The notes: generated by a model not told the origin, from the sequence alone. A DNA stretch of 64,000 nt from Salpingoeca rosetta (GCA_033442325.1 JAWQFM010000008.1:124001-188000), one strand, 5' to 3'; counted from the stretch's first letter, positions 33,901 to 39,900 are shown. Numbers and translations are program-made.

Positions 33901-36900
33901 CCACTTGCGCCTCATCGTGCTTTGATGTGGCTGCTGTGTTCATTACATGCAGATGCAAAGGAGATTGAGATCGACGCCATTGCTGACCGCGGCAAGGTTC
34001 TGATTGCGCTGCTCTCTGAGCACGTGGAGAACGCAGGCGTGCACTCTGGCGATGCGACCATCGTCCACCCGCCACAGGACCTCACAGAGAAGACCATGAA
34101 CGTGCGTCTGGCGTATGATTGCGGCTGTGGTGGTTGGAGCTGCTGTTGTCCTGTACAGGCGGAAGGCTGCACATCGACGGCTTGTGCGTGTGGTGTGTGG
34201 TGTAATGCAATTACCAAGGGCTCGCGATGTGCTCACCATCACCCCACTTCCAACTGCGTTGTAGGGCTGCCGCGAGATTGCTGCCAAGATTGCTGCTGCC
34301 CTCCACATCACTGGGCCCTTCAACATCCAATTCATCGCAAAGGTGTGCATGCATGAAATGTATTTGCTGTTGTTGCTGGTAGCTTGTTTGCTGCTGCATC
34401 GTTGCAACTCTCACTGACGCGAACCGAACACACGCACGCGCATTCACAGGATGACCGCCTGAAAGTGATTGAGACGAACGTGCGCGCATCGCGTTCCCTT
34501 CCCTTTGTCTCCAAGACAGCAGGCATCGATCTCATCTCCCTCGCTACCAAGGTGCGCTTTTGATTCAGAAGGAGGGAGGGTGTTTGTATGTCAATGTGTT
34601 TCTATGTGTGTGTAAGAGGACACGTTTGTGTGTTTATCGATATGCGTCTTTGTGTGTTATTTCACGTCTTGCGTACGCAGGGTAGAGCAACCGCATAAGA
34701 CACACAACCTTCCCTCACATGCCTCCCCGCCCCTTCCATTTACTCTCTCTTCTTTCGTACAGGTGATGGTTGGTGAGCGCGTGTATGTCCCCGAAATTCC
34801 TGAGATTGGTCACGTTGGCGTGAAGGTGCCCCAGTTCTCCTTCAACCGTTTGCCAAGCGCCGATCCCACGCTCGGTGCGTGTGCGTGTGCATATTTGAAT
34901 GTGCGTGGGTGCTCCTGCATGAGACCGTGGTGGATTTGCTGTCAGGGATCATGTGTTCTGCAGCCATTGCTGCCTCACTTCGACACACCCCAAATTCACA
35001 CACACACACACACACACACACACACACACACACACACACACACACACACACACACACACACACACACACACACACACACACACACACACACGTGTGCATT
35101 GGCGCACCGACACCACCACAGGTGTCGACATGATCTCGACTGGGGAGGTTGCATGCTTTGGCGCCACGCGGGAGGAAGCGTACGTGAAGGCCATGGTAGC
35201 CACCAGCTTCATGATCCCAAAGCCAAACGGCAACGTGCTGCTGAGCATTGGCGGTTATGACGGCAAGAAAGAGTTTCTTCCCTCCGCCAAAGCCCTGCTG
35301 GATCTCGGCTTCAAGCTCTTTGGCAGCATGGGTGTGTGGTGACGGTGAAAGCAAGGAGAAGGGTGTTGGGCATGTGAGTGTAAGTGTGTTTAGTGTGTCA
35401 ATGTGCTGTTTGTGTGTGTAAGTGTGTTTAGTGTGTCAATGTGCTGTTTGTGTGTGTGTGTGTGTGCGTGAACGTCGTTTTGCAAAGTGACACACGTCGT
35501 GGCTCTGTGCCTCACTCCCCTGTCTGTCACTCCTTCTCATCTCATCGTGTGCACCCACCATGTGCTGCTGGGGATTCCAACGGCTGTTCAGGCACCGCTG
35601 ACTACTACCTGACGTTTGGGGTCGACATCACGCCCGTGAACTGGCTGGCGGACAGCGAGGATGTTGACAGCATCAAGGACGACCTGATTGCCGGCAAATA
35701 CGACCTCATCATCAACCTCCCCATGCGCAACAAATACAGGTGCAAATACGTGTTTGGATGCGGTGGCCTGTTCCCCCCCCCCCCAAACACACACACACAC
35801 ACACACACACGCTTGCCGTGTGTGCAACGTTCAGCTCGCTTGCAACTGCCACCACCACGCTCACCATGTTCATTGCCGCCACGACGTTTGACACATGACA
35901 ACGTCTGTCAGGCGCCCTGCCTCCTTTACCACCGCCGGCTACGAAGCACGACGCATGGCCGTTGAGCAGAAGGGTGTGTACATGTGTTTGTGTAATATTT
36001 GTTCGTGTGTGCATACGTGTGTGTGTGTGCATGTTGTGTGCAGCTTACGGATTGTTGGCCTTCATGCACAGCCGTGTCGTTGATAGCATCTACCTTTCAT
36101 CCCCATCACCCCGCCCCTAAAATGCTCACAGCTTCCCTCGTATGCCTTGTGGGATGTGTGCATCTGCAGTGCCGCTCATCACGAACATCAAGTGCGCCAA
36201 GCTGTTTGTGGAGGCACTGCGCACGTGCGATGTGTCTCCACACGCGGCACGTGTTGACTGCCAGGCGTCCCATCCCACCCTGTGTCTGCCGGCGCCCATC
36301 GACTGCAGCATCGACCTGGACGAAATCACGCCAGAGGGTCAGTCAGCATCGCATGCAGTGAATGTCCACGCACTGGACAAGGCTCTTGTGGTTCCCGTGC
36401 GTCTGCCATTTCATTTCGCCTCTCTTGTTGCATATGTGATTGTCACTCTTGCGCGCATGAACACGCACACGCCCACCCTCACGCACGTCATACATTTTCC
36501 ACGCCCATCACACCGTGTGCACTCTTTTGTCCACACACACACACACACACACACACACACACACACACACACACACACACACACACACACACACACCTGC
36601 ATGTGCAGCTGCCGCTCGCGCTGGGCAGCAGGCGCTCGCAGGCGGCGCACCAACGGTCCTCATCGCATGCGAGGCAACAGCAGTCTTCAAGACACGCGCA
36701 GATATTGCCCGTGCCAAGGCTGTCCTTGAAGAGCACCTGGCGTGCGACTTTGGCCTGCTGCTGCACGCCCCACCGCCCGGGGCCGACCTCGCTTTGCTTG
36801 AGCGCGCACATGGCGCCGCGGGCCTCATCATCGACTTTGCAACAGTGGTGCGGCAGCTCGCATGCGTGTGTGTATGTGATGTGTGATGTGTGATGTGTGC

Positions 36901-39900
36901 GAGTGTGCGTATTGTGTTGTGTGTACAGATGTGTGTGTGTGTGCGTGCGTGTGTGTCGAGGTGACTTTCTCTTTGCCCACTCATCTTCCCCACCCCCTAC
37001 ACTTGATTTGTACCACAGCACAAGGACCTGCCTGTGTCACACCTCCACGCTGTGATGGACGCCTTCCCTGCCGACCGCCCCATTGTCGTGCGGGCAACAG
37101 GACACGAGTACGTCGATGCAAACCACTTGTCACGCTTTGACTGCATTTTGCTGTTTCTTTGCAACTTCACAAACATGATCACGCTTTGATGTTTCCACTG
37201 CCGACCCATCATGCAACGGCCTCCTCAATCCCCGTCACCCTTCTGCTCGCAACACCATCACCATCACGATCACTAGGCTTGCCTCCGCGCTGCTGTTTGC
37301 GACGATGCTTGGCCGCCGCGTCCACTTTGACCGCGTGCAGACGCCTGCGGATGTTGCTGCTGTGGCGCTCGCCCGTGACCAGGGGTACCCCGTGTCGTGC
37401 GGGGCTGCGCTGCTTGACCTCTTCCCGCCCGCGCCGAAGCAGGACACCAGCGATCTGCCACCGCTCTGGGATGAGATTGACGCAATCGATGTTATCTCCT
37501 CTGGTGCGCTCCCGTGTGTGCGTGTGTCTGTCTGTCTGTCTGTCTGTCTGTGTGTGTCTGCGTATGAGTGTGTGGGTTATTGTGCGCGTGCTTGCCTTTG
37601 TGCACGATGTTGAGCCGTTGCTCGTGTTCTTTGATTGTCATGCTTGCATGCATCGCATTTTTGCATCGTTGCATCATTGTCAATCGAGTGCCCCTGCTTG
37701 TGAACGTTTTCCAACCATCACTGCCTCATCACCCCGGTGTGTTGCATTCAGGCCACGGAGCGGTGCTCAGCAGTGGGCGCGTGTCGTGCGCGTCGGCGCT
37801 GCTCCCGCTTGTGCTGACGGCACTCAGCAACGGCCAGCTCAGCGAGGAAGATGTTCGCGTACGTCATCGCACGCACACAGGCAGTGTTGCCACAAACTTT
37901 GCATGTGATCACGAACCCATCATGAGGTGAAACTACATGTAACCTGCGCGCGCAACGTTCTCATGCCCTCGTAATGCCACCACTGTGTGTCATCAGGCGA
38001 AACTGCACACCAACCCCACACGCATCTTTGCCATCGACGTCAACGAAGACACCATTGTTGAGGTGTGCGCTGCCCTCTGTGTACACTGCCCTCTGTGTGC
38101 ATTTCACTCTGTGTGTGTGTGTGTGTGTGTGTGTGTGTGCGTGTGTGTGTGTGTGTGTGTGCGTGTGTGTGTGTGTGTGTGTGTGTGTGTGTGTGTGTGT
38201 GTGTGTGTGTGTGTGTGTGTGTGTGTGTGGCGTTATGTGTGCGCGCCCATTCCTCGCGCTGGTAAGGTTGCGACAACATGCAACTTGGGTTGGTTGTTTC
38301 GCCACCCTTCACTGCTCACTCACCGCCGCCACATCAACCACCACGTGCTCAGGCTGTTGCAAAGGAGGGCTGCATGTTGCCAAAGGAGGCGGCAGGCGAA
38401 TACGCGCCATTCCACCAGGCCGAAGTACGCGCATGCAATACACACGTACACGCACATACGAAGTGCGCTCGTGTATGTCTGTACCATTCAACGCTCACAT
38501 CGACACGCACACACACACACACACACACGTTCACTCACTCACGTTCACTCACTCACATTGGCACTTTCGCTGCACAGGTTTCGGGCTGCGTGTCGCGCGT
38601 GATGCTGCACGGATGCGTCGCTTACATTGACGGCAAATTCGCCGACAACCTCGCCACCGTCGCGGGTCCAATCGAGGTGCGCTGCTACTGGGCTGTTGAG
38701 AGGGGGTGGGTGGGTTGTTGAGCAACGCGCGCTTGTGTGGAATGTGCCATGTGCCACGGTGCTCCGAGTGCACGACACAACTATTCGCGATGCACCGCAT
38801 GCACGACAGCTGTCACGTTGATGACATGACGACGTGCGTCACCGCCTGCCTCAACCACGCGTGCTTGTCGCGATGGCAGGTGCATGACGTCCCTGCGACG
38901 CGTCCCGAGCCACCCGTCACCGCTGCCGCTACTGTTGTGCGGGCATCAGATGTGCGGGCGCCGTCACGCGAGCGAGAGCGGATTGGTCGCAAGCGCACCA
39001 TCAGCACGCGCTCTTCCACGCGCGAACTCAGACCGGTACGCGCGCGTGTGTGTCTGCGTGTGTGTTTGCTTGCGCGTTGGTATGTGTTGCCAGTGATTCG
39101 ACATTGATTTGCGTCAGAAGGCCATCCTGGCAAACTGCGAAACAAGCACGCACGCATGCACACACACACACACATTCACACACACACACACATTCACACA
39201 TTCACACGCACACACACACACACTCTCTCTCTCTCTCTCTTTCTCTCTTGTCTTGGCTTTAGGAAATCGTTTCGGCTGCAAGCGTGCCTGCCGCTACTGC
39301 CACCAGCGCTTTGCGTGGCGTGAGCGTGCCGCCAGCTGTGCACACCGCCGAGGATGTTTCTCTCCGCACCCGCCAGTCTGTGGCGTTTGCCAACCGAGCA
39401 CGCTGCATCCTCTCCGTGTCGCAGTTCACGAAGCGACAGCTGCACGAGATCTTCAACCTGGCACACGAATGTCTCTCGTCTGGACCGAGCGATGTCCTCA
39501 AGGGCAAGGTCTGTGCTGAGGTTGTGGGGTTGTGTAATGTAGGGCGGTGGGGTGTCATGTCATGTGATAGTGTTGTGTGGAGTTGGGTGGGCGCGTGCTG
39601 GGTTGCCTTGTTTCGTTACGTGGTGTGTATGGTCTGCAATTTGTGGTTTGTCTTCCAGCTGGCCAAAGGGACGGTGAGCAGCTAACATGCGTGTGCCTTG
39701 AACATTCCCCCCGCCCCCGTTCCTCGATCGCCTCACGACGCTTCGTTGTTCGCTTGCTGCATGCAGGTGCTGGCGAACATCTTCTACGAGCCAAGCACGC
39801 GCACGTCATGTTCGTTTGCTGCGGCCATGCAGCGGCTTGGCGGCAGTGTCGTCTCCATCTCAGATGTACGAGCCATACACAGTGCCGTGTGTTGTGGCGC

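Follow-up and report, generated by a model that had tools for sequence, protein, structure and literature searches.

In reviews of pyrimidine biosynthesis, the trifunctional CAD protein is presented as the animal state and a CAD-like protein with a dead dihydroorotase (DHO) domain as the fungal state (PMC8442968). In the literature consulted, the inactive DHO-like domain is described for fungi only, with a dimerizing, hexamer-building role that is shared with the human dihydroorotase (DHOase), and the majority of plant and protist enzymes are given as monofunctional (PMC8442968; PMC8659124). Here we examined the CAD-type gene of the choanoflagellate Salpingoeca rosetta, which lies complete within a 64,000-nucleotide stretch of contig C8 (G000:C8:124001-188000; the window, whose own numbering is used below) in a genome of 55.4 Mb and 68 contigs. 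A first-pass annotation of the window had proposed that this CAD carries a catalytically dead DHOase domain in a fungal Ura2-like state. Comparison of the sequences confirmed that the DHOase domain is degenerate at its catalytic positions. We consider it very likely that the domain is a pseudoenzyme kept as a dimerizing scaffold, with a separate pyrC-type enzyme performing the pathway's third step.

The S. rosetta protein is similar to the fungal CAD-like proteins, represented by Saccharomyces cerevisiae Ura2 and the Chaetomium thermophilum protein (5NNL), in several respects. Glutamine amidotransferase (GATase), carbamoyl phosphate synthetase (CPSase), DHO-like, and aspartate transcarbamoylase (ATCase) domains follow one another in one chain, the DHO-like domain is without an active site while its barrel is kept (here as a prediction), and DHOase comes from a separate type II enzyme. 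Four features of a Ura2-type architecture were found: the domain order, a homologous middle domain with a predicted barrel fold, absent ligands, and a separate DHOase gene. Orthology with the fungal Ura2 clade, however, was not recovered in a tree of the CPSase and ATCase domains; the choanoflagellate gene shares its history with animals, and the substituted residues differ from those of fungi. Furthermore, the free DHOase of S. rosetta resembles proteobacterial pyrC (∼60% identity to bacteria) and is only distantly like yeast URA4.

Animal CAD (human, 4C6C) is the closest relative by CPSase and ATCase phylogeny and provides the best sequence and structure match to the domain (template modeling [TM] score up to 0.80), with the same domain order and a similar linker length. 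Yet animal domains keep the HxH motif, the carboxylated Lys, the His, the Cys-His, and the Asp-x-x-x-His, of which the choanoflagellate domain has none. The animal DHOase domain also evolves as slowly as the rest of its protein, whereas the choanoflagellate domain evolves much faster. The S. rosetta protein does not qualify as an animal-type trifunctional CAD, since it shows no Amidohydro_1 or DHOase match and the ligands are absent.

Active-site positions of the DHO-like domain

The CAD-type gene occupies positions 24921 to 41388 of the + strand in many short exons; the window is intron-rich, with a G+C content of 55%, and + strand open-frame pieces from ∼24.9 to 41.4 kb matched the Pfam CPSase, MGS-like, and ATCase families. 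The product is the public S. rosetta protein XP_004995659.1 (EGD82423.1; P0173), of 2,172 amino acids, whose entry is named carbamoylphosphate synthase. When P0173 was compared with the window by tblastn, 28 high-scoring segment pairs of 91 to 100% identity spanned 24921-41388. The order of domains in the single polypeptide is GATase, CPSase (two ATP-grasp halves, MGS-like), DHO-like, linker, and ATCase. Pfam placed the GATase parts at residues 8 to 362, CPSase and MGS at 397 to 1427, and ATCase at 1876 to 2167, with the DHO-like part in between.

Residues 1424 to 1790 of P0173 matched structures of the human CAD DHOase domain with a phmmer E value of ∼1e-26, and the same segment matched the inactive dihydroorotase-like domain of Chaetomium (5NNL) with an E value of 1.5e-23 over domain residues 38 to 341. 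In the phmmer alignment, the human CAD motifs and the corresponding S. rosetta residues, all on the + strand, were as follows.

36301-36315: human DvHvH, S. rosetta DcSiD
36821-36835: human GLKL, S. rosetta GLII (within GLIID)
37082-37096: human IVaHA, S. rosetta IVvRA
37323-37337: human HIcHV, S. rosetta HFdRV, with the Cys-His lost
exon 4: human aPHH, S. rosetta aLLD
37497-37503 and 37752-37765, split by an intron: human SDHAPH, S. rosetta SGHGAV (SSG/HGAV)

The metal ligands, the carboxylated Lys, and the catalytic Asp were all replaced, and none of the six motifs was kept. The five substitutions listed by the first-pass annotation were each present at the places given for them, DCSID at exactly 36301-36315; that list had left off a sixth, the change of PHH to LLD in exon 4. 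By comparison, when 134 CAD domains were aligned with MAFFT, 101 retained all of the catalytic residues, including those of sponges, Trichoplax, fish, and several Amoebozoa. Pfam recognized no family in P0173 between residues 1427 and 1876, where fish CAD has Amidohydro_1, and the NCBIfam DHOase models scored P0173 at 25 bits or less against cutoffs of 279 to 405. The proposal of a pseudo-DHOase therefore held up, with six ligand or catalytic positions lost, the DHOase model cutoffs failed, and the fold kept in the prediction described below.

The GATase, CPSase, and ATCase motifs are intact, as had also been claimed. Those of GATase (GICLGHQ and HPE) and ATCase (STRT, HPTQ, QKER, and HPLPR) stand at the positions that they have in fish CAD, whose Pfam scores for the GATase, CPSase, MGS, and ATCase domains are matched by P0173. 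The GATase, CPSase, and ATCase domains would be expected to work. In contrast, the DHO-like domain would be unable to bind two or three Zn ions or to activate water, because the histidines of the HxH motif, the carboxylated Lys, two further His residues, and the catalytic Asp are replaced. We infer that the domain lacks DHOase activity. No hidden or alternative DHOase-like exons were found in the window with active DHOase domains as queries. Exon 1 alone returned nothing relevant from the PDB, single-exon queries being too weak for so divergent a domain.

The DHO-like part, 36170-38676, consists of eight exons that join into one open frame, and all eight introns are GT..AG, in agreement with the earlier statement that these exons are retained in frame. 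We derived an exon model manually, guided by reading frame, GT..AG borders, and phase (36170-36337, 36609-36847, 37019-37107, 37277-37503, 37752-37858, 37997-38062, 38353-38424, 38578-38676, and then 38880 onward, + strand), and it was 98% identical to P0173 (XP_004995659.1). The sole difference lies at the junction of exons 1 and 2, where the intron (36338-36631) has two in-frame GT..AG solutions. The hand model has its donor after 36337 and its acceptor before 36609, and the public model has its donor after 36357 and its acceptor before 36632. The alternatives differ by a few residues of a surface loop, and the catalytic positions are untouched. With the public junction, the features are as follows.

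36170-36357, + strand: DHO-like exon 1, end of the CPSase/DHO junction and first beta strand, with DCSID at 36301-36315; alternative in-frame donor after 36337
36632-36847, + strand: DHO-like exon 2, with an in-frame acceptor at 36609 as the alternative; GLIID occupies 36821-36835, with Ile (36827-36829) at the place of the carboxylated Lys
37019-37107, + strand: DHO-like exon 3, IVVRA at 37082-37096, with Arg (37091-37093) for a metal-binding His
37277-37503, + strand: DHO-like exon 4, HFDRV at 37323-37337 and LLD for PHH; ends with SS and the first base of Gly; carries the predicted dimer-interface helices
37752-37858, + strand: DHO-like exon 5, (G)HGAV at 37752-37765 for DHAPH, the catalytic Asp replaced by Gly and the last His by Val
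37997-38062, + strand: DHO-like exon 6, conserved ..HTNPTRIF.. helix
38353-38424, + strand: DHO-like exon 7
38578-38676, + strand: DHO-like exon 8, C-terminal strands of the "adjacent domain" (..RVMLHG..AYIDGK..); the interval of the first-pass annotation stops here
38880-39047, 3' end approximate, + strand: first exon of the linker from DHO-like domain to ATCase, basic and rich in Ser and Thr, with RKRTIS at 38988-39005

In animal CAD, the linker is a recognized phosphoregulation site. The RKRTIS sequence (38988-39005) in the basic, Ser/Thr-rich stretch of the S. rosetta linker resembles a site for basophilic (AGC-type) kinases. Three of the introns (36848-37018, 36338-36608, and 38063-38352) start TG/GT-rich and end CA-rich, contain (CA)n or (TG)n runs of 60 to 130 bases, and show no obvious pyrimidine tract ahead of the AG. 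The share of words from 35400-39600 that fell in runs guessed to be RNA was 0.33 to 0.39, near the exon share of ∼0.4 obtained for that stretch by manual addition, which is an indirect hint only. Weak tblastn matches at 42056-42106 lie past the stop codon in repeat-rich sequence and were taken as noise. A run of N, marking an assembly gap, is found at 42860-42970, ∼1.5 kb downstream from where the CAD frame stops.

A separate pyrC-type dihydroorotase gene

The first-pass annotation had predicted that a stand-alone DHOase would be encoded elsewhere, and an intact gene of this kind was found. When the TIGR00856 profile (pyrC_dimer) was run against the whole genome, it matched seven colinear exons on the minus strand of another contig, at C3:362387-365300. 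The product, annotated as S. rosetta dihydroorotase (P0276; 362 amino acids), mapped to C3:362213-365782, minus strand, in ∼11 exons and scored 401.1 bits on TIGR00856, against an equivalog cutoff of 292.95. The exons encode DDLHLHLRDG, AVK/LYPAG, LLVHGE, VMEHITT, and GTDSAPH, which make up a complete type II active site with its HxH, Lys, His, His, and Asp residues. Like the E. coli-type PyrC enzymes (TIGR00856; 1XGE, 5VGM, and 4LFY), with which it aligns end to end, the enzyme keeps all of the catalytic residues, and it is 57 to 62% identical to gamma- and betaproteobacterial enzymes. Unlike them, it is encoded by a eukaryotic gene with about ten introns, and its product falls within a choanoflagellate clade.

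The first-pass annotation had suggested looking for a URA4/pyrC type; the enzyme found is pyrC-like and is not close to yeast URA4. Among solved structures, P0276 scored 403 bits with 5VGM, 401 with 4LFY, and 345 with E. coli 1XGE, as against 149 with the yeast DHOase (6L0A). Its nearest relatives were the choanoflagellate enzymes of Microstomoeca roanoka (76%) and Savillea parva (62%), followed by many gamma- and betaproteobacterial and oomycete enzymes at 57 to 62% identity. In a quick maximum-likelihood tree, the choanoflagellate stand-alone enzymes formed one clade (Shimodaira-Hasegawa-like approximate likelihood ratio test [SH-aLRT], 94), separate from the oomycetes and not nested in any sampled bacterial clade. 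This placement supports a single origin of the stand-alone DHOase before the choanoflagellate radiation, as judged from these sequences, since the choanoflagellate enzymes form one clade outside the sampled bacterial clades. As to a possible horizontal origin, the enzymes have a clade of their own without nesting in the sampled bacteria, and they are about equidistant (57 to 62%) from proteobacteria and oomycetes.

The gene on C3 was the only DHOase found in the genome, which was also searched with the PF01979 and TIGR00857 profiles; with the DHOase domain of a sponge CAD as the query, no second copy was found. Two amidohydrolase matches considered as DHOases proved to be other enzymes, an isoaspartyl dipeptidase on C10 and a guanine deaminase on C16. 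The latter (L001; C16:331108-333741, minus strand) is an intronless frame of 577 to 592 amino acids that scored 561 to 606 bits on bacterial guanine deaminase models. Being intronless in an otherwise intron-rich genome, this guanine deaminase gene may have been horizontally acquired.

Distribution of the dead domain and independence from fungi

Equally degenerate domains were present in Salpingoeca urceolata, Diaphanoeca grandis, Savillea parva, and one more EukProt entry of the same transcriptome format, and several relatives derived from metagenomes or the Sequence Read Archive were likewise degenerate. Five choanoflagellate species keep the DHO-like domain in frame and at almost its whole length. 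The dead domain is therefore common to all of the sampled choanoflagellates, which cover both orders. The degenerate orthologues derived from transcriptomes argue against rescue of the active site by alternative exons. As originally worded, the pseudo-DHOase was a state of "this lineage"; the pseudo-DHOase stands, and it is not special to S. rosetta, as all sampled choanoflagellates share it.

The label "fungal-like" fared similarly, in that the pseudo-DHOase was borne out and the wording understates how often the state occurs, several other eukaryote lineages having dead or partly dead domains. Dead domains were also seen in Diphylleia and Rigifila (CRuMs), in Compsopogon (a red alga), in a chytrid, and in a basidiomycete. 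The domain of Amoeba proteus is dead, whereas those of other Amoebozoa are active. The fully degenerate DHO-like proteins comprised P0059 (Amoeba proteus), P0168 (Diphylleia), P0008 (Rigifila), P0015 (Compsopogon), P0036, P0152, and P0249, with red-alga-like sequences among them.

The cryptophyte-type CADs appear to be partly degenerate in sequence. Those of P0172 (Guillardia theta), P0174 (Rhodomonas), P0161, P0163 to P0167, P0171, P0177, and P0222 keep HxH (IDxHVHVR) and HHAPH and are without the carboxylated Lys (GLSMEL or GLCMEL), the next His (IVVRAES), and the His of the Cys-His pair (HVCAL), which suggests a partial loss.

A tree of 30 CADs over 1,770 columns was inferred from CPSase and ATCase, with the DHO-like and linker columns removed. 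The choanoflagellate CADs were monophyletic (100) and clustered with those of animals and cryptophytes (SH-aLRT, 98), and the fungal CADs stood elsewhere, with red algae and Amoebozoa. The best tree that forced choanoflagellates and fungi together was worse by 94 log likelihood units and was rejected (approximately unbiased test, P = 6.7e-6). With the choanoflagellate CADs placed beside those of animals and a clade with fungi rejected, the loss of the DHOase active site was independent of the loss in fungi, just as the first-pass annotation had thought probable. Because rebuilding six catalytic residues is implausible, the fused DHOase domain was most likely still active in the ancestor that animals share with choanoflagellates, as read from these sequences.

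On this tree, the active or dead state requires at least four to five changes. One possible generalization, which we offer tentatively and hold to be somewhat less probable than its negation, is that the CAD DHOase domain has died recurrently (in choanoflagellates, fungi, red algae, CRuMs, and Amoeba proteus, and partially in cryptophytes), on no fewer than four to five occasions, whenever a lineage also carries a pyrC-type DHOase. If so, the animal stem, with its reliance on the fused domain, would be the exception among opisthokonts. Either both enzymes would have been present in the ancestor of animals and choanoflagellates, or the choanoflagellates would have taken up a bacterial pyrC, after which the fused domain decayed. 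The repeated keeping of a dead barrel would then be a natural experiment pointing to an architectural role as the selected function. In the literature searched, we found no description of repeated DHOase-domain loss across eukaryotes.

Fold, dimer, and function of the retained domain

An AlphaFold2 model of the P0173 domain, built from a 19-sequence alignment, had a mean predicted local distance difference test (pLDDT) value of 81.7, a predicted TM score (pTM) of 0.83, and an alternating strand-helix pattern. The best PDB matches by Foldseek were the human CAD DHOase domain (TM score, 0.72 to 0.80; E value, 1e-24 to 1e-26) and 5NNL (TM score, 0.71 to 0.80). The domain is thus predicted to keep the barrel fold of the CAD DHOase despite the loss of residues. 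Dead and active domains have 14 invariant columns in common, and no metal ligand is among them. A two-copy complex prediction gave an interface score (ipSAE) of 0.54 against 0.00 for the best control. Of 30 proteins solved as same-chain pairs, 21 attained the pass mark, and of 23 solved as single chains, none did. Contact agreement between runs was at least 98%, and the partner pLDDT was at least 82. The predicted interface comprises domain residues 139 to 144, 162 to 174, and 188 to 199.

Between choanoflagellates the DHO-like part is 23 to 33% identical, as against 62 to 69% for the rest of the protein, and in animal CADs the DHOase part and the rest are both 62 to 67% identical. The length of the DHO-like part is 307 to 331 amino acids in all of the choanoflagellates compared. 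By these comparisons, constraint on the domain appears relaxed but not absent, with the length kept.

The scaffold reading that we prefer would work as follows. The nearly full-length alpha/beta-barrel most likely still dimerizes side by side, and barrel dimers together with ATCase trimers would hold a hexameric particle together, as has been shown for human CAD and for the CAD-like protein of Chaetomium. The separate, soluble, homodimeric pyrC-type (type II) DHOase from the other contig, which presumably supplies all of the DHOase activity, would catalyze step three of pyrimidine synthesis. Some points weigh against this reading. The dimer prediction may reflect memory of the solved relatives 4C6C and 5NNL. 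Identity among choanoflagellates is 0.37 at the interface and 0.27 in the rest of the domain, a difference that is not significant (permutation P = 0.13). The splice pattern is taken from the public annotation, from GT..AG logic, and from orthologues in the transcriptomes of other choanoflagellates. Finally, there is a weak PF01979 (Amidohydro_1) match on C22, which fits neither DHOase model.

The low identity of the domain relative to the rest of the protein and the lack of significantly greater conservation at interface positions would also suit a decaying spacer with no structural role, tolerated since its deletion would disturb the spacing of CPSase and ATCase. We regard this as unlikely, given that five choanoflagellate species of both orders, and several other lineages, have kept the domain in frame and almost entire, that its fold is confidently predicted and a homodimer with it, and that 14 structural columns do not vary between dead and active domains. 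Moreover, the fungal domain of the same kind is needed for hexamer assembly (PMC8442968).

Less likely again is a new noncatalytic role, such as ligand sensing, regulation of ATCase or CPSase, or docking of the free DHOase to channel carbamoyl aspartate. Pseudoenzymes often turn into regulators, and this domain has been retained over long times. There is also a bacterial parallel, for bacterial pseudo-DHOases are reported to be needed for ATCase activity (PMC7053772). In Pseudomonas aeruginosa, an inactive DHOase homologue is the structural partner of ATCase and an active DHOase is encoded elsewhere (PMC7053772; PMC8442968), which resembles S. rosetta, yet the bacterial homologue is a separate polypeptide of the type I lineage and that of S. 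rosetta is a fused domain. Against a new role, the former active site shows no new conserved motif, and its pocket residues vary between choanoflagellates.

It is very improbable that the domain has remained an active DHOase, whether by alternative splicing or by unconventional chemistry, or that the sequence is an assembly or annotation artefact: the one exon junction with two possible in-frame forms lends it some room, but an independent public annotation has the same sequence, transcriptome-derived choanoflagellate orthologues are equally degenerate, searches of the window and of the rest of the genome found no alternative exons resembling DHOase, and six essential positions were lost together.

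A literature search for dihydroorotase together with choanoflagellate, Monosiga, or Salpingoeca returned nothing relevant. The CAD and stand-alone proteins were already public under automatic names, and what is new is the reading and not the sequence. The pseudoenzyme scaffold reading places the "fungal" CAD arrangement, independently reached, in the closest living relatives of animals. Since choanoflagellates have a dead fused domain, possession of an active fused DHOase is not general among holozoans. The choanoflagellate domains, divergent in sequence and conserved in predicted fold, provide an independent set of natural pseudo-DHOases that could be used for testing the surfaces involved in CAD hexamer assembly. 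S. rosetta is genetically tractable, and its separate DHOase gene is a candidate auxotrophy or selection marker, analogous to the URA genes of yeast.

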